64,000 nt of DNA. Source: Lytechinus pictus. Its lineage: Eukaryota. The stretch covers positions 13,702,001-13,766,000 of the forward strand of contig NC_087261.1 of NCBI RefSeq assembly GCF_037042905.1. The letters are read 5' to 3'. The notes under the pieces were generated by a model. The model was not told where the DNA came from. It was given only the letters and a program-made list of their open reading frames with translations, and searched no databases. Position numbers and translations under genes: made by a program. Of this stretch, positions 7,865 through 44,482 are shown one piece after another (the stretch's first letter is position 1; the number at the start of each line of letters is the position of its first letter).

Positions 7865-7998
7865 NNNNNNNNNNNNNNNNNNNNNNNNNNNNNNNNNNNN
7901 NNNNNNNNNNNNNNNNNNNNNNNNNNNNNNNNNNNNNNNNNNNNNNNNNNNNNNNNNNNNNNNNNNNNNNNNNNNNNNNNNNNNNNNNNNNNNNNNNN
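7865..7998. other. Assembly gap (others at 17072-17217 and 30401-30539)
   Basis: Runs of N. Confidence 0.99.
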
Positions 7999-16352: not shown

Positions 16353-17638
16353 AATACAGATTTATTGTTACAATTAATATTGGTCAATACCCCCAATTTC
16401 CGACCCACACAATAAAGTCTGAACTTTTGAAATATTTAATTGGTTGTGTCAAAAGTGATGTTGTATATACATGCAGAATTAGCAGAAATACACATCGAAC
16501 ACCTGCTCAGTCACGTCCCACTAAAAACAGACAAAAAGAAATATCCGTGACCAATATTGATTGTTAACTTACCTGCTTCAATCGCTATACAAACATTAGG
16601 TGTTTCATATGACAACACAATTTTACTAGTAACAAAGTTTTAATTAATTTTCAAATGTTCTTTGTTTAGAAAAAAAAAGCAAAATGAAGCAAACGTTAAA
16701 AAATGGTTTAAAGGGTGGAGGCGTGCCCAATATCAATAAAAACAAACCGTATTACGATTGGGGCAAGAGGGATCCCCCCATTATTTTTAAACTTTTTTTC
16801 CAATTCGGACATGCATCTAAACAAATTTTTAATTGAAAGTAAAAAGGTATATTCAAAATCGTGATTGGAAAAACAACAGCAGCAAAGAAAGTTGGAGACG
16901 CAATTTTCCACCAGAACATTGTAACTTCTCCCTCACACTTTTGCGGCCAAATAAAATCAAGCTCCCTCCTTTCTCTGTCCCTCTCTCTCTCACTCCTATC
17001 ATGATTATAGGACTATTTATAATATTCACCTTCTTTTACTTGTTTTTCTTAATCTCTCCATCAGCTTATATNNNNNNNNNNNNNNNNNNNNNNNNNNNNN
17101 NNNNNNNNNNNNNNNNNNNNNNNNNNNNNNNNNNNNNNNNNNNNNNNNNNNNNNNNNNNNNNNNNNNNNNNNNNNNNNNNNNNNNNNNNNNNNNNNNNNN
17201 NNNNNNNNNNNNNNNNNCACACTTCCTCTTTCTCTTTCGCATCTCTTCTGAAGTCTCTATCTCAATTGTATTACGACCGACACGCGTTCTTAATTAGCAG
17301 TGCGTGTATCTAGGAGCGATTTCATGCTCAAAATATATTAAATAATTATATTTCTTGAAAAAAGATATAAAGGGTTTGTTTGGTATGATATTTGTGGTTG
17401 TGAAATGACTTCAGGTTGATGTTGGTAAGACTGATGCGAGTTGCACATTAAGGTAGTAAAAACCGTTGGAAAAATCTCATTAGCCAAACGACTTCAATGG
17501 TTTGAATAGTGATATAATGAAATATTTGGACTTATGAAGTGCGGTTTCAATTATGGATCCAAAATAACTTTGTTGAATCGCTCGGGTAGCCTATATCATA
17601 TCAAAATCTAGCCCCAAGACTCACAAATTCATTCCACC

Positions 17639-18925
17639 ATGGCTATCATTGTCGGTGCTTTTACTACTTTCTACGCTCTCATATTCTGTATTGGGGTAAC
17701 GAGCAACCTTGTCATTCTAGCTGGGTACTCTAAGAAGAAGAAGAAAAATGGCACGGATATTTTCATCATGGGTTTAGCTGTAACCGATTTCCTATGCTCC
17801 GCAATATCTATTTTGAAATTCAGAGCATGGATAGCAAATAACGCATATTGCAAGCTTCAATTTGCCACCAATGTATGGTTTGCAAGTAGCCAGATGGCGT
17901 TGACTCTCGTAATTAACATTGACAGGTACTTGGCGGTGTGTTTCCCGGTTCACCGCCGACCTACAGTTCGCCGCGCGGTCATCACCGTTGCGTTTGCGTA
18001 TCTGGCTATGTTTTTCTTCTTTGCCGCTCCGAGTCTTATCCCGACGCATTACGATGACTTCATCAAAGATTGCATGTACAGGTCGGATATCAATTGGTTT
18101 AATCAATACGACAAATACATTGGGCAGGGGTTCATCGTGGTCACGGTCTCTGTTTCCTTATTGTTGTATTTTCGTATCATCCTCGCTCTGCGTCGCCAGT
18201 CCAAAGTGCGTAGCAGTCTCCTCCCAAATCTATCCAGTTCTAAAGCTCCCCATCGTGAATTAGGGACCAGTTCTGCTAATCTACCCAGAGTTGCCAATGC
18301 TATCTCTGAAGTACATCATGACAAGGCCTTATCACAGAATAGCCCAACTAAAGAGGGTGGTGTCATCCGGGATCGAGGTGGCTCATTCGTTGTCCAGGAA
18401 AGAATACTACATCCGAGGGAATATGAAGCAGAAGAAGATGGGGCTTCCACAATCTCAGACCGAGGGTTACCCAAATCCACCGACATTGCCGATGGCGGTA
18501 CCGAACCAAAACAACCCCAGACTGGTCAACAATCGGGAAGTGTTCCTGACGCACTTGATGGGCCATCAGGAACGGGTCCAACCTTGCTTTCAGCCAACAA
18601 ACCGAACACGAAACCGAGCACCGTTAACGCCAACCAGCTAACAGAACGGAGATTGACATTGATGTTGGGCTGCGTAACCGTCATCTATGCCGTCAGCCTG
18701 ATACCAATGTTTGTTGGCCGTTACATGCCGATCGAGACTCGCAGAGTTTTCATGAACAGGTCGAATATCCATCATACCATCTACGCCATCTTCATTCGTC
18801 TTTATGAGGTCAACTCGGTTATCAACGTTTTCGTTTACTGGAAACTAAATAGACGTTTTCGGAAGGATTGTCAAGAATTTCTTGCCAAGATCAGGCGAAC
18901 TATCTGTAAGTGCAAGATGCACTGA
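17639..18925 (+). CDS. Intronless class A (rhodopsin-like) orphan GPCR, type A, 428 aa
   Basis: Seven hydrophobic segments, SN (N1.50), LAVTD (D2.50), C3.25, IDRYLAVCFP, long S/T/P/G-rich ICL3, NSVINVFVYW and helix 8. Confidence 0.95.
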   Translation: MAIIVGAFTTFYALIFCIGVTSNLVILAGYSKKKKKNGTDIFIMGLAVTDFLCSAISILKFRAWIANNAYCKLQFATNVWFASSQMALTLVINIDRYLAVCFPVHRRPTVRRAVITVAFAYLAMFFFFAAPSLIPTHYDDFIKDCMYRSDINWFNQYDKYIGQGFIVVTVSVSLLLYFRIILALRRQSKVRSSLLPNLSSSKAPHRELGTSSANLPRVANAISEVHHDKALSQNSPTKEGGVIRDRGGSFVVQERILHPREYEAEEDGASTISDRGLPKSTDIADGGTEPKQPQTGQQSGSVPDALDGPSGTGPTLLSANKPNTKPSTVNANQLTERRLTLMLGCVTVIYAVSLIPMFVGRYMPIETRRVFMNRSNIHHTIYAIFIRLYEVNSVINVFVYWKLNRRFRKDCQEFLAKIRRTICKCKMH

Positions 18926-20478: not shown

Positions 20479-20635
20479 GGGAGCGTTTCATGTAAGGAGT
20501 TGTCGGACGTTTTATCCGACGAGTCCCATTTTATCCGACAGTTACCATAGTAACAATGCTTCTTAGCCAATCAACATCAAGAAAAGTTGTCAGGTCTGAC
20601 AACTTGTCAGACAAAAATGATGATGAAACGGGCCC
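20479..20635. mobile_element. Harbinger-like MITE carrying an X-box and CCAAT
   Basis: GGGAGCGTTTCAT...ATGAAACGGGCCC; absent from the paralogous sites (TGACCTGGAGTAGG at 31721 and 42466); inverted copy at 53067-53223. Confidence 0.8.
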
Positions 20636-21724: not shown

Positions 21725-23026
21725 ATGGCCATCATTCGGAGCGTCTTTTATGTTTTCTACGCAATCATATTCGCCATCGGACTACCAAGCAATATGGTCA
21801 TTTTGGCGGTGTACGCCGCAAAGAGGAAAAAGAACGGAACAGATGTCTTCATCATGGGCCTGTCTATCACCGATTTACTCTCCTCGATGATATGCCTGCT
21901 TAAATTCAAGGTATGGGTCGCCAGTGACATCTTTTGCAAAATCGAATGGTTTATTGAAGGTTTGTTTATAGGTCATCAGTGGATGATGACAGTAATTATT
22001 AGCATTGACCGTTACTTAGCGGTGTGTTTTCCCATTCACCGTCGGCCGAAGGTCCGTCAAGCCATCATCATTGTCGCCATAGCTTATCTGTTTACGTTTA
22101 CGATGATGACACCATGTATTCCGGCGATACACTACGTTGACCTCATCGAAGACTGCATGTACAGGTCAGACCTCGAATGGTTCAAAAAGTTTGATAATTA
22201 CTTTGGACAAGGGTTCACCATTAGCATTATCTGCACGTCATCCTTATTCTATTACCGGACCATTTTTGCCCTTCGTCGCCTGTCAAAGGTTCACGCAAGA
22301 CTTGTTGGCAACCCATCTAGCAAATCGGCACTTCCAAGTGCCTCTAAGTATTCTTCGCACCTTAACCAAACCCATATCAACAACTCTGTAGAGACCGCAT
22401 CATGTGAACGGATACCTGGTCAGAAATCAGATGTCGATATTGGGCTTGGCAAGCCCAACCACCAAACAGATCAACCAACTGCTTACACCGATTCCAGAAA
22501 TACTCTATCCGGGTGCATCGATACATCTTTGAACGTCCCGCCAAAAGAAACATATCTACTTGCAACTACAAACGAGTCCTCTACAAGCCAAGGATCACAA
22601 AGCAATCTTGAAACCTTCTCTGGCAAACACCTTGACATGACTGGTCCTACCATTCCAACAGTTTCAGCATCGGTGGTCCCCAACGCTCCATCATCACAGA
22701 TGGCAATAGACCGTGGTGATCAGAATGACAAAAAAGACAGCCGACAGTCAGAAAAAAAATTGACGGCAACACTCGGTGTCATTACCAGTATCCAGCTCAT
22801 TACCATGATACCGTTAGTCATCGGTAGATATATACCCATTGAAACGAGGCAAGCATTCATGAGCAGATCTAACGCACATCATACCATTTATGCCATCATG
22901 TTTCGCCTGTGTGAAGTCAACTCGTTCATCAATGTGTTTGTTTACTGGCGATTGAACAAGGTTTTCCGTCGGGATTGTCAAGTCTTATTCGGACGTATCT
23001 GGCAGTCAGTCTTAAAAAAGAAGTAG
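21725..23026 (+). CDS. Intronless class A orphan GPCR, type B copy 1, 433 aa
   Basis: 7TM, PSN, LSITD, IDRYLAVCFP, NSFINVFVYW; paralog of 17639-18925. Confidence 0.95.
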   Translation: MAIIRSVFYVFYAIIFAIGLPSNMVILAVYAAKRKKNGTDVFIMGLSITDLLSSMICLLKFKVWVASDIFCKIEWFIEGLFIGHQWMMTVIISIDRYLAVCFPIHRRPKVRQAIIIVAIAYLFTFTMMTPCIPAIHYVDLIEDCMYRSDLEWFKKFDNYFGQGFTISIICTSSLFYYRTIFALRRLSKVHARLVGNPSSKSALPSASKYSSHLNQTHINNSVETASCERIPGQKSDVDIGLGKPNHQTDQPTAYTDSRNTLSGCIDTSLNVPPKETYLLATTNESSTSQGSQSNLETFSGKHLDMTGPTIPTVSASVVPNAPSSQMAIDRGDQNDKKDSRQSEKKLTATLGVITSIQLITMIPLVIGRYIPIETRQAFMSRSNAHHTIYAIMFRLCEVNSFINVFVYWRLNKVFRRDCQVLFGRIWQSVLKKK

Positions 23027-23748
23027 ACCGTTTGCGAACAAAAAATGTGTTAATACCATACAAGACCCTCGCACGAGGCCTACCCATGTTATCAATGATC
23101 GTAAGAAACGTCGTACTAAATCGGGGGGGGGGGGGGTGCTGTCTTATAATTTCGATTTTTTATTTTATTTTATTTTTATTTTTTTTAGTTGTCAAGCGCA
23201 CGTACACTTGACAAAATTAAAGAGGTTTGGACTTGGACAAGTATAGGGCGCCCGCGGAATCGCACAATAAATGATAATAAAATAAACATGACCAGGGTCT
23301 ATCACGAGGTCGTACGTTGTTGATAATACGATGAATTTATATGGACTCCGATCGATCATCGTATAGACCAAATTTGCACCAAGTGTTTTTTTCTTCGTAA
23401 TATATTCTTGTTGGATCTGTTTATGCGTATACTTATTTAAATGTATGTCGTTCATATGAACCTTAATTCATGCACAGTTAGGCTCGTAACTTAGCAACTT
23501 TACAATGTATATATTGTTACCATGGGAACTTAATAACTTGGTATGCTTGGTTCAGGTTGTTTTTTCTTCTTCAAAATTCTAAAACTCTTGTTGAATTAAT
23601 CCCAAATGCTTGAAGTGATGATGTATCATTGTGCCCATAGTGCCAAGGTGAACATGATGAATTTACTTAATCTTTTTTTCTTCTGCGAGCGTCACTTGAA
23701 GTATTTTTCGCTAACTCTTGTCTTGTCTTGGCTTCTTGCACACTCATT

Positions 23749-24069
23749 GGCCCGCATTCTGAAGTCGGGTTTAACTTAAACACAGGTTTAAAGTTGTGGT
23801 TTAAGTATGGACAGCTGTTATGGACAATTGGTACATAAATCACTAACAGTAGGGATATAATATTTCAGCTCATTTGGCTCTCAAATCATTCATAATTGTT
23901 TAGGAAGTATATATAGATTATTGTCTTCACCATCGATGAATCAGGAAAGAGCACAGAAAACATAAGAAACGTACAACTTAATAAAAAAAATTGATACTTT
24001 TGGCTGTCCATACTTAAACCACAAATTTAAACCTGAGTTTAACTTAAACCTGACTTCAGAATACGGGCC
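23749..24069. mobile_element. Harbinger-like MITE, 3-bp TSD
   Basis: ATT|GGCCCGCATTCTGAAGTC ... GACTTCAGAATACGGGCC|ATT; empty site in the duplicate at about 34372-34385. Confidence 0.88.
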
Positions 24070-24980
24070 ATTATATCTACGTAATTGGTATTCATTTTAG
24101 TTGCAGTGATAGACGTAGGATAAATTCATTTTCAACTGACATGTAACGTGAACGAAAAATTAAACATGTACAATAATTGTTTTTGCCCGATATTGTATGA
24201 CAGTGTGAGAAACAAACACGCATATTTCTGTTATTGTGTAGGCCTAAATATAACATCTCAAAGCACATTTAAGGTTGATTTTGCAGTGTGATTCTTTGTG
24301 TGCTATTTGTAAAATATTGGACTCTGTCATGTTATGTTTACTATATTTTGGAAAAAGTGAAACGAAAGTGAATGAAATCTAAATATCTATGACCTAAAAT
24401 ATATCACATTTACACATCAGTTGACGTTATGGAACCGACATAATTGTCTATTCTCTTGACCCATCATACCAACAAACAGTATTTTTTCCATTTCATGATG
24501 CAGTCATAACCGATAACGACGAACCGAATCGAAAAACGACCGACGCTATGTCGGTGAAAATAACGTATAAGTTTGATCGGTCTGTACACTCACGTGTTTA
24601 AATAAATCCAAATCGACTCTGAACAGTGAATATACCGAACATTGGATTTATATTAAATCCTAACGATTTAACTTTTAAATCTTTTCAGATTAAAAACAAT
24701 TTTTAAAGCGTTTTGTTCAAATCCACAAGGTTTCAATCTAAATCTATTACTCGACTGGTAACTAGTAGCAGCCGATATGGAATTATTTTAAATCCTTGAA
24801 ATTTAGAGTATAGTAGGGTTCATGCATGACTACCCGTAATGGAATAATCACAAATCAGCATTATTGATTCAATTATTGCACAACGCCTATTAAAAAAAAT
24901 GTAAGTGACAAGTTAGTATTCACAGAAACTTGTCACCGCAGCACTGCTTAAATAGGAATTAGAAGAAGTGAAACTGATTT

Positions 24981-30165: not shown

Positions 30166-32439
30166 GAATTGAAAAAAAAAAAACGAGTGCGAAACACGAA
30201 AGAGTAAAGCACAATCACGAACAGACGAGCAGTTGTATATTGCTCACTAATTGTCGTTTTGAAACAGTCATTTTGAGGATGTACATGTCCACTAATATTC
30301 CTAAATGATTGTTGTAAAACGTTTAAAGTATTTTGCGTATATTTGCTGATTGTTTTTTTCCCTAGTGTATATGGTTCTTTGACCATATTCATCACAAAAT
30401 NNNNNNNNNNNNNNNNNNNNNNNNNNNNNNNNNNNNNNNNNNNNNNNNNNNNNNNNNNNNNNNNNNNNNNNNNNNNNNNNNNNNNNNNNNNNNNNNNNNN
30501 NNNNNNNNNNNNNNNNNNNNNNNNNNNNNNNNNNNNNNNATTTTTTCAGGTGTGACTGTCCAAAATATTCAATAAATTAACCACCGTCCACCCTCCTTCC
30601 TCAATCAACTCATTTGAACTATCAATTACCTTAGCGTTTCGATAATTTTAGATTTCCCCCACAACTTTCTGTCGAGCAAAACTGCAGTTACAAACATTTT
30701 TTTTTTAATTAAAAGATACAAATCTTTGCAAGCAATGTTCTTGCTTGGGTGGTTATCTGAAATGTCTCATTGTAAAAGCAACGAGTCATGATATCAAATT
30801 GCATTAACCACTGATAGATGAATAACTCATCCATTTCTTTTGCACGGTCGAATACCTCATAAAAGAAATAATTCCTATTCTAATGCATTTATGCAATCCT
30901 CGTATTAGGCCAACACGACTTTGATATGAAATATTCTATTCTTTTATATTAATGGGTCTTTGATTTTTTTTCTGGATTTGGAGTCCGAGGATTAGGATCG
31001 CAGGACGCCATTAAATTCTCTTTTCATAATAAATCTATCTTTCTAAACAATACTGAATACAATAATGAATGTAAGAATAATGGACTGCGCATTAAATCAG
31101 GGAGAATAGTGGAAAACAACAAAAAATCGAATTAAAACAGACATGCCCTTTATTTAATTTTTACAATGTCTCCGATGTCATATTTTAATGATATACATTT
31201 TAATTCTTTCAAGTGTTTTTGTGAGTAATGTCCTTCTTTGTTTGTATAATGGAATTTTCTTATTCCTAATGTAGCTCCAAGTCATAGAGATTAGAGATTT
31301 GTTTTCTTAATTTTAGGAACAATGAAATATAGTCCATTAATGGAAAGTCCCTAATGGCTTTTGCATTCATAAAAAATTGGAAGGGATTACGTTACAAAAT
31401 CCAGAAATAAAACATGCAGTGGAAGTTATCTGGTAGCATCTTCATCAAAGAAACTTCTTCGATTCCTGAGAACACTTGCTAATGCTTGGGTCATATTGTA
31501 CCTTTTATTATAATGAAGAAAGGGACAACTCCGGGTTAATATCACAGAACGCAGTACTCCCGGGGAGTTTGTATTTAAAGGAAGAAGAGGCAAGGTGACC
31601 CGAGGGTGACGCCATTGTTTTATTACAGTCGCACCAACAAACCTTCTCTGAACCACTGATCTCTGGACCAGTACTCTTGGCGGACCAAAGATTATTCCGA
31701 ATGGCAGGCATATCATTGGTTGACCTGGAGTAGGTTTCGTTGGCGTGAGTGTGACTGTAGAATAAGGGTCATAATCAACTACATAGCCAAATACTCTTCT
31801 TTATTCAATCTTACATTTTCTATTCTTCTCCATTTTTCCACTTGAAAAAATCACAGCTACACTGACTAAAAAACAATGCTGATTGCAAGCAAAGATTCAT
31901 TAAAAGTTTGAAAGAAAAGCAAAGTCGAATTTAAAATATACTGGTAATGATATTTCTTAAAGCTTTTGCTTTATTTAGTTCTTTATCTATACTTAATGGA
32001 CTACTATGCCTGTTGTACTTTTAGCAATTTACATCTATGCTACAAATGTGATAAAGAATACATTGCAAAGGAGGATGGGGTAGGCCGGGAGGACAAGCAA
32101 TTACGTCACTGATGTTCTTTCTTCAGCCAACATGAAACAAAGGTACAGAGGGATGGTGTTCCAGCGATATCTTCTGTGCCATGAACGTTTCTCAGTCCTC
32201 ACAAATTACATAAACTGATCTCTTTTGAATCAGGTTGAATTGGACGTTTTGAAATCCATTCAGAGATTATCCAACTGGTGTCCACATATAAAGCACTTAC
32301 TTCGTGTACGATACACCCAATCTTCGAGCAATTTTCGGAGTAACGTTGATCAGCCGTAGCCCCAACCACTCTACCAAAGGAACCAGGGAGCAAACGGCAC
32401 ATCTTGACTGACTGTTCCAGAGAAGCACCTGAATCGAAC

Positions 32440-33741
32440 ATGGCCATCATTCGGAGCGTCTTTTATGCTTTTTACGCAATCATATTCGCCATCGGACTGC
32501 CAAGCAATATGGTCATTTTGGCGGTATACGCTGCAAAGAGGAAAAAGAACGGAACAGACGTATTCATCATGGGCCTGTCTTTCACCGATTTATTTTCCTC
32601 GATGATATGCCTCCTTAAATTCAAGGTATGGGTCGCCAGTGACATATTTTGCAAAATCAAATGGTTTATTGACATATGGTTTATAGGCAATCAGTGGGCG
32701 ATGACAGTAGTTATTAGTTTTGACCGGTACTTGGCGGTGTGTTTTCCCGTTCACCGTCGGCCGAAGGTCCGTCAAGCCATCATCATTGTCGCCATCGCTT
32801 ATCTGTTCATGTTTACGATGATGACACCACTTCTTCCGGCGATACATTACGTTGAACTCATCGAAGACTGCATGTACAGGTCAGACCTCGAATGGTTCAA
32901 TAAGTTTGATAAATACTTTGGACAAGGGCTCATCATTAGCGTTATCTGCACCTCATCCTTATTCTATTGTCGGACCATTTTTGTCCTTCGTCGCCTGTCA
33001 AAGGTTCACGCAAGACTTGTTGGCAATCCATCTAGCAAATTGGCACTTTCAAGTACCACAAAGCATTCTTTGCACCTTGCACAAACCAATATCAACAACT
33101 CTGGAGAGACCGCATCATGTGAACGGATACCTGGTCAGGAATCAGATGTCGATATTGGGCTTGGCAAGCCCAACCACCAAACAGACCAACCAACTGTTTA
33201 CCCCGTTTCAGGAAGCACTTTATCTGGATGCAACGATACATCTTTGAACGTCCCGCCAAGAGAAGCATCTCTGCTTGCAACTACAAACGAGTCCACTACA
33301 AATCAAGGATCACAATGCAATCTTAAAACCGTCTCTGGCAAACACCTTGATGTGACTGGACCTACCACTTCGACAGGTGCAGCATTGATGGTCCCCAACG
33401 CTCCATCATCCCAGATGGTAGTAGACCGCATTGACAAGAATGACAAAAATGACAGCCGTTTGTCAGAAAAGAAATTGACGGCAACACTCGGTGTCATTAC
33501 CAGTATTCAGCTCATGAGCATGATACCGTTAGTCATCGGCAGATATATACCCATTGAAACGCGGCAAGCATTCATGAGCAGATCTAACGCACATCATACC
33601 ATTTATGCCATCATCTTTCGCCTGTATGAAGTCAACTCGTTCATCAATGTGTTTGTTTATTGGCGATTGAACAAGGTTTTCCGTCGGGATTGTCAAGTCT
33701 TATTCGGACGCATCTGGCAATCAGTCTTCAAAATGAAGTAG
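32440..33741 (+). CDS. Intronless class A orphan GPCR, type B copy 2, 433 aa
   Basis: ATG at 32440 in the same GAACATGGCC context as its paralogs (the track's 32404 start is a TTG); FDRYLAVCFP; intact ORF. Confidence 0.95.
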   Translation: MAIIRSVFYAFYAIIFAIGLPSNMVILAVYAAKRKKNGTDVFIMGLSFTDLFSSMICLLKFKVWVASDIFCKIKWFIDIWFIGNQWAMTVVISFDRYLAVCFPVHRRPKVRQAIIIVAIAYLFMFTMMTPLLPAIHYVELIEDCMYRSDLEWFNKFDKYFGQGLIISVICTSSLFYCRTIFVLRRLSKVHARLVGNPSSKLALSSTTKHSLHLAQTNINNSGETASCERIPGQESDVDIGLGKPNHQTDQPTVYPVSGSTLSGCNDTSLNVPPREASLLATTNESTTNQGSQCNLKTVSGKHLDVTGPTTSTGAALMVPNAPSSQMVVDRIDKNDKNDSRLSEKKLTATLGVITSIQLMSMIPLVIGRYIPIETRQAFMSRSNAHHTIYAIIFRLYEVNSFINVFVYWRLNKVFRRDCQVLFGRIWQSVFKMK

Positions 33742-40956: not shown

Positions 40957-43183
40957 GAATTGAAAAAAAAAATAAGTGCGAAACACGAAAGAGTAAAGCA
41001 CAATCACGAACAGACGAGCAGTTGTGTAGTGCTCACTAATTATCGTTTTGAAACAGTCATTTTGAGGATGTACATGTCCACTAATATTCCTAAATGATTG
41101 TTGTACAGCGTTTGAGGTATTTTGCGTATATTTGCTGATTGGCTTTTTTTCCTAGTGTATATAGTTCTTTGACCATATTCATCACAAAATCTATTGTCAA
41201 GCACTCGTCTCTCTCTTCTCCCTCTCTTCCCCTTCGTCTCCCCATCTCTCTCTCACACACACACACTCTCTTAATAATGTCATTTCGATTTTTTTTCAGG
41301 TGTGACTGTCCAAAATATTCAATATATTAACCACCGTCCACCCTCCTTCCTCAATCAACTCATTTGAATTATCAATTACCTTAGCGTTTCAATTATTTTA
41401 GATTTTCCCCCAACTTTCTGTCGAGCAAAACTGCAGTTACAAACATTTTTTTTTTATTAAAAGATACAAATCTTTGCAACCAATGTTCTTGCTTCGATGG
41501 TAATCTGAAATGTCTCATTGTAAAAGCAACGAGTCATGATATCAAATTGCATTTACCACTGGCAGATGAATAACTCATCTATTTTTTTTGCACGGTCGAA
41601 TACCTCATAAAAGAAATAATTCCTATTCTAATGCATTTATGTAATCCTCGTATTAGGCCAACACGACTTTGATATGAAATATTCTATTCTTTTATATTAA
41701 TGGGTCTTTGATTTTTTTTCTTGATTTGGAGTCCGAGGATTAGGATCGCAAAACGCCATTAAATTCTCTTTTCATGATAATTTTTTTTTGTACAATACTG
41801 AATACAATAATGAATGTAAGAATAATGGACTGCGAATTAAATCAGGTAGAATAGTGGAAAACAACAAAAAATCGAATTAAAACAGATATGCCCTTTATTT
41901 AATTTTTACAATGTCTCTGATGTCACATTTTAATGATATACATTTTAATTCTTTCAAGTGTTTTTGTGAGTAATGTCCTTCTTTGTTTGTATAATGGAAT
42001 TTTCTTATTCCTAATGTAGCTCCAAGTCAAAGAAATTAGAGATTTGTTTTCTTAATTTTAGGAACAATGAAATATAGTCCATTAATGGAAAGTCCCTAAT
42101 GGCTTTTGCATTCATAAAAAAATTGAAGGGATTACGTTACAAAATCCAGAAATAAAATATGCAGTGGAAGTTATCTGGTAGCATCTTCATCAAAGGAACT
42201 TCTTCGATTCCTGAGAACACTTGCTAATGCTTGGGTCATATTGTACTTTTTATTATAATGAAGAAAGGGGCAACTCCGGGTTAATATCACAGAACGCGGT
42301 ACTCCCGGGGAGTTTGTATTAAAAGGAAGAAGAGGCAAGGTGACCCGAGGGTGACGCCATTGTTTTATTACAGTCGCACCAACAAACCGTGTCTGAACCA
42401 CTGATCGCTGGACCAGTGCTCTGGGCGGACCAAAGATTATTCCGAATGGCAGGCATATCATTGGTTGACCTGGAGTAGGTTTCGTTGGCGTGAGTGTGAC
42501 TGTAGAATAAGGGTCATAATCAACTACATAGCCAAATACTCTTCTTTCTTTATTCAATCTTACATTTTCTATTCTTCTTCATTTTTCCACTTGAAAAAAT
42601 CACAGCTACACTGACTAAAAAACAATGCTGATTGCAAGCAAAGATTCATTTAAAGTTTGAAAGAAAAGCAAAGTCGAGTTAAAAATATACTGGTAATGAT
42701 ATTTCTTAAAGCATTTGCTTTATTCAATTCTTTATATATACTTAATGAACTATGCCTGTTGTACTTTTAGCAATTTATATCTATGCTACAAATGTGATAA
42801 AGAATACATTGCAAAGGAGGATGTGATAGGCCGAGAGGACAAGCAATTACGTCACTGATGTTCTTTCTTCAGCCAACATCAAACAAAGGTACAGAGGGAT
42901 GGTGTTCCAGCGATATCTTCTGTGCCATGAACGTTTCTCAGTCCCCACCAATTATATAAACTGATCTCTTTTAAATCAGGTTGAATTGGACGTTTTGAAA
43001 TCCATTCAGAGATTATCCAACTGGTGTGCACATATAAAGCACTTACTTCGTGTACGATACACCCCATCTTCGAGCGATTCTAGGAGTTGATCAGCCATAG
43101 CCCCAACCACTCATCTACCAAAGGAACAAAGGAGCAAACGGCGCATCCTGATTGATTGCTCCAGAGAAGCACCTGAATCGAAC

Positions 43184-44482
43184 ATGGCCATCATTCGGAG
43201 CGTCTTTTATGCTTTTTATGCAATCATATTCGCCATCGGACTGCCAAGCAATATGGTCATTTTGGCGGTGTACGCTGCAAAGAGGAAAAAGAACGGAACA
43301 GATGTATTCATCATGGGCCTGTCTATCACCGATTTACTCTCCTCGATGATATGCCTGCTTAAATTCAAGGTATGGGTCGCCAGTGACATCTTTTGCAAAA
43401 TCAAATGGTTTATTGACGGATCGTTTATAGGTCATCAGTGGATGATGACAGTAGCTATTAGCATTGACCGTTACTTAGCGGTGTGTTTTCCCGTTCACCG
43501 TCGGCCGAAGGTTCGTCAAGCCATCATCATTGTCGCCATCGCTTATATGTTAACTTTTACGACGATGATACCATGTATTCCGGCGATACATTACGTTGAA
43601 CTCATCGAAGACTGCATGTACAGGTCAGACCTCGAATGGTTCAAAAAGTTTGATAAATACTTTGGACAAGGGTACATCATTAGCATTATCTGCACGTCAT
43701 CCTTATTCTATTGTCGGACCATTTTTGCCCTTCGTCGCCTGTCAAAGGTTCACGCAAGACTTGTTGGCAATCCATCTAGCAAATCGGCACTTCCAAGTGC
43801 CTCTAAGAATTCTTTGCACCTTGCACAAACCAATATCAACAACTCTGGAGAGACCGCATCATGTGAACGGATACCTAATCAGAAATCAGATGTTGATATT
43901 GGGCTTGGCAAGCCCAACCACCAAACAGATCAACCAACTGTTTACCCGGTTCCGGGAAGCACTTTATCTGGATGCATCGATACATCTTTGAACATCCCGC
44001 CAAAAGAAGCATCTCTGCTTGCAACTACAAACGAGTCCTCTACAAGTCAAGGATCACAATGCAATCTGGAAACCGTCTCTGGCAAACATATTGATGTGCC
44101 TGGTCCTACCACTTCGACAGGTTCAGCATCGGTGGTCCCCAACGCTCCATCATCACAGATGGCAATAGACCGTGGTGATCAGAATGACAAAAAAGACAGC
44201 CGTCTGTCAGAAAAGAAATTGACGGCAACACTCTGTGTCATTACCAGTATTCAGCTCATGAGCATGATACCGTTAGTCATCGGTAGATATATACCCATTG
44301 AAACGCGGCAAGCATTCATGAGCAGATCTAACGCACATCATACCATTTATGCCATTATCTTTCGCCTGTATGAAGTCAACTCGTTCATCAATGTGTTTGT
44401 TTATTGGCGATTGAACAAGGTTTTCCGTCACGATTGTAAAGTTGTATTCGGACGCATTTGGCAGGTAGTCTTCAACAAGTAG
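43184..44482 (+). CDS. Intronless class A orphan GPCR, type B copy 3, 432 aa
   Basis: 7TM, IDRYLAVCFP, NSFINVFVYW; intact ORF. Confidence 0.95.
   Translation: MAIIRSVFYAFYAIIFAIGLPSNMVILAVYAAKRKKNGTDVFIMGLSITDLLSSMICLLKFKVWVASDIFCKIKWFIDGSFIGHQWMMTVAISIDRYLAVCFPVHRRPKVRQAIIIVAIAYMLTFTTMIPCIPAIHYVELIEDCMYRSDLEWFKKFDKYFGQGYIISIICTSSLFYCRTIFALRRLSKVHARLVGNPSSKSALPSASKNSLHLAQTNINNSGETASCERIPNQKSDVDIGLGKPNHQTDQPTVYPVPGSTLSGCIDTSLNIPPKEASLLATTNESSTSQGSQCNLETVSGKHIDVPGPTTSTGSASVVPNAPSSQMAIDRGDQNDKKDSRLSEKKLTATLCVITSIQLMSMIPLVIGRYIPIETRQAFMSRSNAHHTIYAIIFRLYEVNSFINVFVYWRLNKVFRHDCKVVFGRIWQVVFNK

Follow-up and report, generated by a model that had tools for sequence, protein, structure and literature searches.

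We analysed a stretch of 64,000 nucleotides (nt) of the Lytechinus pictus genome (GCF_037042905.1, NC_087261.1:13,702,001-13,766,000, forward strand; hereafter the window), in which four uninterrupted plus-strand open reading frames (ORFs) encode one type A and three type B (B1, B2 and B3) receptors. On sequence evidence, these are probably orphan, chemoreceptor-like G protein-coupled receptors (GPCRs) of class A from a small echinoid-restricted family, combining a conserved charged anchor with a variable wall formed by transmembrane helices (TM) 3 to 5. The fast change of this pocket wall around an acidic residue that is kept at position 3.32 suggests chemosensory tuning, and the ligand is probably charged or zwitterionic; that it should be an amine or a cation, we regard as rather unlikely.

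Each of the four coding regions is a single exon whose translation is the same or nearly the same as a RefSeq L. pictus protein, and all four ORFs match Pfam PF00001 (7tm_1) at 80-104 bits against a cut-off of 30.5 (E=1.8e-29 for type A). Beyond 7tm_1, the Pfam scan returned only weak Srx/Srg/Srsx matches and no 7tm_4, and the remaining window ORFs of at least 100 amino acids (aa) had no Pfam match. Identity between the B genes and A is ~44%; among B1, B2 and B3 it is 85-88%, making these paralogs similar rather than otherwise near-identical, as an earlier sequence-only reading of this DNA had called them. The receptor genes, and the segments of B1 on which the argument turns, are:

17639-18925, plus strand: type A receptor gene, single-exon ORF of 428 aa; Q3.28, N3.32 (N codon 17870-17872)
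21725-23026, plus strand: type B1 receptor gene, single-exon ORF of 433 aa; positional ortholog of L. variegatus XP_041484639 (LvBa)
21932-22015, plus strand: TM3 of B1, from F3.24 to Y3.51; E3.28 at 21944-21946, E3.32 at 21956-21958
22193-22219, plus strand: start of TM5 of B1; family-invariant D5.39 (22193-22195), variable pair 5.46-5.47 (22214-22219)
22826-22915, plus strand: TM6-TM7 of B1; R6.55 (22826-22828), H7.31/H7.32, R7.40 and E7.43 (22913-22915), invariant columns of family alignment A2
32440-33741, plus strand: type B2 receptor gene, 433 aa from ATG; K3.28, D3.32 (D codon 32671-32673)
43184-44482, plus strand: type B3 receptor gene, 432 aa; K3.28, D3.32 (D codon 43415-43417)

Position 3.32 and the age of its acid

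The numbering of TM3 rests on a gap-free count from C3.25 to R3.50, which in B1 runs from C71 (21935-21937) to R96 of the DRY motif, 25 residues apart, just as the sequence-only reading had counted it. A HMMER alignment to NPFF receptor 2 also passes from C3.25 to DRY without a gap and therefore places E78 of B1 on its Q3.32, and a cysteine stands exactly 25 residues ahead of R3.50 in 104/110 aligned relatives. Direct reading returns the residues that had been reported, with E (B1), D (B2), D (B3) and N (A) at 3.32, and with neighbours in B1/B2/B3 of E/K/K at 3.28, G/I/G at 3.33, L/W/S at 3.34 and H/N/H at 3.38. The TM5 pair that differs between these copies (F-T/L-I/Y-I) corresponds to 5.46-5.47 as counted from Y5.58, to which the TM5 numbering was tied because P5.50 is absent.

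The proposal that this family is independent of vertebrate aminergic receptors and trace amine-associated receptors (TAARs) also stood, with close relatives confined to the echinoids Lytechinus, Strongylocentrotus and Diadema. These comprise an L. variegatus A gene and two L. variegatus B genes (LvBa and LvBb), an S. purpuratus B ortholog, a Strongylocentrotus-type paralog (P0006), a C21 subtype with its own S. purpuratus ortholog, and a Diadema gene. The L. variegatus orthologs keep the same gene order, A-to-B spacing is alike in both Lytechinus species (~2.7-2.8 kb), and the tree places B1 with LvBa (support 97/96). At 50% identity the family forms ~6-8 clusters, with ~6-7 genes in the L. 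pictus genome; more distant relatives (~20-30% identity) are other echinoderm intronless GPCRs, and above ~130 bits a profile search returned none but echinoderm-type relatives.

An acid at 3.32 had been described for all type B receptors, and every B gene does carry D or E there, but the acid is not confined to type B. The S. purpuratus B ORF and both L. variegatus B genes have K3.28 with D3.32, and P0006 has K3.28 with E3.32, while the outgroups carry T (C21 type and P0010) or S (the Diadema gene) at 3.32. The full S. purpuratus B ORF (L033:9734-11005, in the stretch L033:9734-11008 of AAGJ06000018.1) includes TM1-TM3 with K3.28 and D3.32; the corresponding RefSeq model, LOC105443544 (335 aa), begins inside TM3 of a frame that is open for a further 267 nt upstream to an ATG, so that this model looks N-terminally truncated. 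P0006 groups with A at a support of 65/53, and its placement with B is not rejected (approximately unbiased test, p=0.34). Wherever P0006 falls, the pair of K3.28 and an acid at 3.32 is older than the Lytechinus/Strongylocentrotus split and not a peculiarity of type B, and the acids of B1, B2 and B3 are one inherited state rather than three separate events; an acid ancestral to A and B and a single gain in P0006 and B are not separated by the tree supports. Within this history B1 is a derived copy whose K3.28E, D3.32E and W3.34L changes arose after its split from LvBa: the first two are derived because LvBa, LvBb, B2 and S. purpuratus B keep K and D, and the third because LvBa, LvBb and B2 keep W3.34 (S. 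purpuratus B has C3.34).

Pocket residues and the amine question

B1 retains the microswitches N23 (1.50), D50 (2.50), DRY at 95-97 (3.49-3.51), the C71/C144 pair (3.25 and 45.50), Y176 (5.58), P363 (6.50), N403 (7.49) and Y407 (7.53), and departs from the class-A norm in V7.50 (giving NVxxY), M6.48, the lack of P5.50, and Y in place of W4.50. The family is marked by hardly any N-terminus, a third intracellular loop (ICL3) of ~140 residues, a short tail and NVxxY for NPxxY. W6.48 is replaced by M or L in types A and B and kept in other family members. D5.39, R6.55 and E7.43 are invariant in alignment A2, as are R7.40 and H7.31/H7.32, while some of the former three differ in more distant members. 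As 3.33 passes through five residue states, 3.32 stays D or E in the B clade and P0006.

From the acid at 3.32, the sequence-only reading had drawn the idea that type B receptors are independently arisen amine, polyamine or cation sensors, in which D/E3.32 would serve as the counter-ion of the ligand ammonium, as it does in aminergic receptors and TAARs. The constancy of the acid beside a changing 3.33 speaks for this idea, as does the B1 pocket, where four acids (E3.28, E3.32, D5.39 and E7.43) face one base (R6.55), and the variable pocket recalls olfactory TAARs, as do the tiny surface outside the membrane, the lack of introns and the tandem arrangement. The aminergic D3.32 itself is present in B2 and B3; B1 has E there, an acid other than Asp. 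In amine sites D3.32 is accompanied by W6.48, F6.51/F6.52, W7.40 and Y7.43. These companions are absent from our genes, which according to the pocket table have I3.36, M6.48, L6.51, V6.52, R7.40 and E7.43, whereas D3.32, C3.36, W7.40, G7.42 and Y7.43 are all seen in P0081 and P0144, two aminergic-type hits of our profile search. The acid is moreover paired with K3.28 in 7/8 of the full-length acid-bearing family genes of the pocket table, B1 being the exception. Since K3.28 lies one helical turn above the acid and R6.55 is also in the pocket, a free counter-ion is not to be assumed. Nor is an acid at 3.32 specific to amines, as opioid, somatostatin and melanin-concentrating hormone (MCH) receptors use D3.32 for the cationic group of their peptide ligands. 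With D or E at 3.32 in 17/90 non-family relatives, an acid there is not rare in the superfamily.

Sequence and fold neighbours are foremost peptide receptors. A phmmer search of the Protein Data Bank (PDB) did not return aminergic receptors as the closest sequence relatives: its list is headed by NPFF2, BB3 and CCK-A (~1e-10) and continues through NPY1 (to ~1e-9) before 5-HT2C (~5e-8) and TAAR13 (2e-7). An AlphaFold2 (AF2) model, built on a 110-sequence alignment after an earlier 10-sequence alignment had given an unusable confidence (predicted local distance difference test, pLDDT, of 44), reached a pLDDT above 90 in the TMs and shows a β-hairpin in the second extracellular loop (ECL2). Its Foldseek neighbours were orexin, ghrelin, NMU, NPY and opioid receptors, with class-A matches all at a probability of 1.00, and a search of the ESM Atlas gave generic class-A clusters only. 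In place of the TAAR fingerprint, TM7/helix 8 reads NS..NV..YW.LN.., without the Pro and the C-terminal aromatic part of that motif. TAARs form a vertebrate-only clade that is sister to HTR4 and bears its fingerprint motif after TM7 (PMC8032801).

Automatic RefSeq names disagree even among orthologs (dopamine D3-, TAAR1-, 5-HT4-, 5-HT1A-, GHSR- and TRHR-like). Membership of the aminergic receptors or the TAARs was rejected, given the absent companions, the peptide receptors among the nearest solved sequences and folds, and these conflicting names. Taking both sides together, we hold it to be somewhat doubtful that type B receptors are amine or cation sensors of independent origin. The fuller version, in which echinoid TAAR-like amine/polyamine chemoreceptors of independent origin would use D/E3.32 as ammonium counter-ion beside the acids of positions 5.39 and 7.43, diversifying selection on TM3-5 would have retuned the B paralogs, and B1 would sense di- or polyamines, strikes us as a degree less likely than that.

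Variability of the TM3-5 wall

We next consider the wall itself. Across the five Lytechinus B genes, the minimum number of changes, taken codon by codon, adds up as follows:

Outer halves of TM3, TM4 and TM5: 40 codons, 32 nonsynonymous and 8 synonymous changes
All other TM codons: 167 codons, 40 nonsynonymous and 47 synonymous changes
TM3 from 3.25 to 3.38 alone: 14 codons, 10 nonsynonymous and 3 synonymous changes

The TM3-5 outer halves differ significantly from the other TM codons (Fisher p=4e-4), with pairwise Nei-Gojobori (NG86) dN/dS ratios (ω) of 0.59-1.25, where the other TM codons have 0.07-0.31 and ICL3, which is disordered, has 0.5-1.0. They also carry more nonsynonymous changes per codon than ICL3 (0.80 vs. 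0.40, p=0.0014) at equal synonymous rates. Canonical class-A pocket positions are variable at 17/38 sites as against 38/169 of the other TM positions (p=0.008). Between B1 and LvBa, 111/111 inner-TM residues agree but only 33/40 of those in the TM3-5 outer halves, and the S. purpuratus B gene shares 40-47% of its residues with the Lytechinus B genes in the TM3-5 outer halves, compared with 79-86% in the outer halves of TM1/2/6/7. For the type A ortholog pair (with L. variegatus), an overall ω of 0.21 falls to 0.12 in the TM3-5 outer halves. The hypervariable pocket that the sequence-only reading had placed around 3.32 is therefore borne out for the TM3-4-5 wall as a whole, while TM3 3.25-3.38 alone is marginal (p=0.07); the dN/dS comparison likewise puts the TM3-5 outer halves above the other TM codons, but at a regional ω of ~1 and not above 1.

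The history of the array complicates these comparisons. Upstream of B2 and B3, 1.9 kb (30541-32439 vs. 41291-43183) are 4.1% diverged, compared with 7.0% for the coding sequence (CDS; dS 0.11), while the B1 flanks are 19-24% diverged from those of the other copies and the B1 CDS 7-9%. This mismatch between flank and CDS points to a mosaic history or gene conversion, with a mosaic produced by gene conversion being the probable course.

Several of our observations weigh against reading the wall as tuned around a ligand-binding acid. The mosaic history blurs tree-based inference. The orientation of TM3 residues toward the pocket was taken from canonical class-A geometry rather than from model coordinates; in that geometry 3.34 and 3.38 face TM4 or lipid and not the pocket, and by the same assumption about half of the variable TM3 positions (3.31, 3.34, 3.38, 3.41, 3.45 and 3.48) would presumably be turned to TM4 or lipid. 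Over the 40 codons of the TM3-5 outer halves, the spread of the 32 changes agrees with a Poisson distribution. Positive selection is not shown, because of ω ~1, this Poisson spread, the mosaic history and the half of the variable TM3 sites that are off the pocket face; relaxed constraint after duplication fits equally well. Finally, the receptor's own K3.28 or R6.55 could cancel the charge of D/E3.32.

In another reading, D/E3.32 would be mainly a structural residue, salt-bridged inside the receptor to K3.28 (i to i+4 on one helix) or R6.55, with TM3-5 variability reflecting not ligand tuning but relaxed constraint after recent duplication plus patchy gene conversion. Such a role agrees with the lysine beside the acid in all but one of the acid-bearing genes, with ω ~1 and Poisson-spread changes, with a B2/B3 flank less diverged than the CDS, and with variable TM3 sites of which half are on the non-pocket face. 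Most non-aminergic relatives with an acid at 3.32 also have a nearby base, such as R7.42, R7.39 or K3.36, although the co-occurrence of acid and base across relatives is not significant and is descriptive only. Yet B1 swapped K3.28 for E and is still acidic at 3.32, and the B1/LvBa pair is strongly constrained elsewhere (other-TM ω 0.07) while 7/40 residues of the TM3-5 outer halves differ. As no TM region changes faster between S. purpuratus and Lytechinus orthologs than the TM3-5 outer halves, and all ORFs are intact, the pattern argues for tolerated or favoured functional divergence rather than decay, and we consider a mainly structural acid unlikely.

A further possibility is that these are receptors for endogenous ligands, whether a peptide or transmitter that bears a cationic group or a zwitterion (an amino acid, for example), and not environmental chemosensors. 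For the A and C21-type genes there are 1:1 orthologs, kept by purifying selection (ω 0.21), the family is small (no more than ~7 genes per genome), the nearest solved relatives are neuropeptide receptors, ECL2 of the model is a β-hairpin, and R6.55 together with the pocket acids would suit a zwitterion. The scarcely developed N-terminus and very short loops, however, offer little peptide-capture surface, and the ligand-side wall diverges fast even between orthologs, which would be unusual for conserved endogenous ligands; an endogenous role seems to us quite unlikely.

Under the chemoreceptor reading that we favour, one branch of the family would have gained K3.28 and D/E3.32 on the pocket face of TM3 before the Lytechinus/Strongylocentrotus split, Lytechinus A being without them (Q/N), and tandem duplications, with some gene conversion among their products, would then have multiplied type B. 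The conserved TM1/2/6/7 side (R6.55, H7.31/7.32 and E7.43), together with the K3.28-D/E3.32 island, may hold a small ligand, be it polar, cationic or zwitterionic, by its charged groups. Selectivity may be set by the fast-changing outer halves of TM3, TM4 and TM5, such that copies would differ in tuning as in chemosensory families.

Organisation and sequence support of the cluster

The B genes lie in a tandem array, within a window that also has three runs of N:

21237-44554, plus strand: tandem array with B1, B2 and B3; ~10.7-kb units, gene starts 10715 and 10744 bp apart
7865-7998, 17072-17217 and 30401-30539: runs of N, one of them inside the first tandem unit, just ahead of the best-conserved B2/B3 block

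Self-BLAST of the array gives colinear blocks at 80-94% identity. That B2 and B3 might be mis-assembled alleles was considered and rejected: the units are mostly 6-20% diverged, the repeat crosses the N gap, and each copy has private residues. B2, for which an in-frame TTG lies further upstream than the ATG, at 32404, gained no separate read support in these data. B1 is matched exactly by one low-depth DNA run, and contigs from three small runs of presumed RNA cover parts of the CDS with B3 letters at 19/19 diagnostic sites, these being CDS-only pieces of B3 rather than B1. Compared with RefSeq, type A differs from XP_054772292.1 at 1/428 residues and B3 from XP_054772294.1 at 9/432, with 0 of these within TM3 3.25-3.50; the B3 differences are probably allelic variation, larger in B3 than in A. 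In each of four runs, the stretches 20500-20633 and 23716-24117 in the B1 flanks have contigs 10^4-10^5 deep, which marks these stretches as high-copy repeats, presumably transposon pieces.

Two further groups of related genes were observed elsewhere in the L. pictus genome. C21:13640556-13641749 and C21:1996348-1997541 (L005 and L006) are nearly identical family paralogs of 403 aa with T3.32 and a retained W6.48, lying 11.6 Mb apart on one contig in opposite orientation, as a segmental duplication or an assembly duplicate. Clusters at C14:11.90-12.05 Mb and C13:5.80-5.82 Mb (L007, L011, L012, L015, L021 and L023) consist of related intronless GPCRs of ~24-32% identity that often have E3.32. 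Among the 50%-identity cluster representatives of these relatives, several (P0018, P0019, P0021 and others) combine E3.32 with R7.42, a possible TM3-TM7 ion pair in another urchin receptor lineage.

Comparison with known receptor systems

Echinoderms are well known for lineage-specific rhodopsin-type GPCRs whose genes are intronless and clustered, and which are all orphans (PMC7042368, PMC5442662). Our genes resemble the surreal-GPCRs of sea urchins and the odorant receptor-like genes of starfish and sea cucumber in being intronless class-A genes in tandem arrays, echinoderm-only and orphan (PMC7042368, PMC5442662). They also share with surreal-GPCRs a long Ser/Thr/Pro-rich ICL3, and their relatives of 24-32% identity in the L. 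pictus genome are such clusters, on C14, C13 and C10. The original description of the surreal-GPCRs divides that rapidly expanded lineage into groups A-F. Unlike surreal-GPCRs, the present family is small and has stable orthologs from Diadema to camarodont urchins, with only Lytechinus type B modestly expanded, and it has a signature of its own (no N-terminus, NVxxY, D5.39, R6.55, R7.40 and E7.43). The cluster is thus a new, small member of the echinoderm lineage-specific intronless GPCRs, with its own motif set and with genes that are already in RefSeq; their RefSeq and LOC identifiers had no match in the literature searched, and their automatic "-like" names are not to be taken as function. 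As none of the echinoderm chemoreceptor-like GPCRs has a known ligand (PMC7042368), the family offers a tractable entry point, with clear orthologs and a conserved charged motif (K3.28, D/E3.32, D5.39, R6.55 and E7.43). Its three very recent paralogs, differing mainly in one pocket wall, are natural chimeras for deorphanisation and selectivity mapping.

With aminergic receptors and TAARs, the genes share an intronless coding region, the acid at 3.32 and their proportions (N-terminus and tail short, ICL3 long), and with olfactory TAARs they share tandem paralogs with pocket variation. They differ from both in being without W6.48, F6.51, F6.52, W7.40, Y7.43, C3.36 and the TM5 serines, and in showing no preferential similarity to them in sequence or fold; TAARs are moreover reported to be absent outside vertebrates (PMC8032801). 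Were the amine reading true, the cluster would be a convergent counterpart to TAARs, and if not, an ordinary lineage-specific orphan GPCR cluster.

Peptide receptors (opioid, somatostatin and MCH, as well as the RF-amide-type NPFF and NPY receptors) give the best sequence and fold matches and have in common with our genes a β-hairpin ECL2, modelled in our case, and a polar contact at 3.32. These matches, however, stand at a generic class-A level only (~12-16% identity in the fold matches), the genes have no N-terminal or loop capture surface, and their TM6 and TM7 motifs differ. For K3.28-D3.32, an analogy is provided by S1P1 and LPA1, in which R3.28 with E/Q3.29 binds a zwitterionic or anionic head group: both have a neighbouring base and acid at the top of TM3, facing the pocket, but the positions and spacing are different, no signal of homology links them to our genes, and the analogy does not imply a lipid ligand. 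Finally, vertebrate odorant receptors are intronless, arranged in tandem and most variable in TM3-TM5, and our genes are like them in all three respects while belonging to another class-A branch (7tm_1, not 7tm_4) with far fewer copies.

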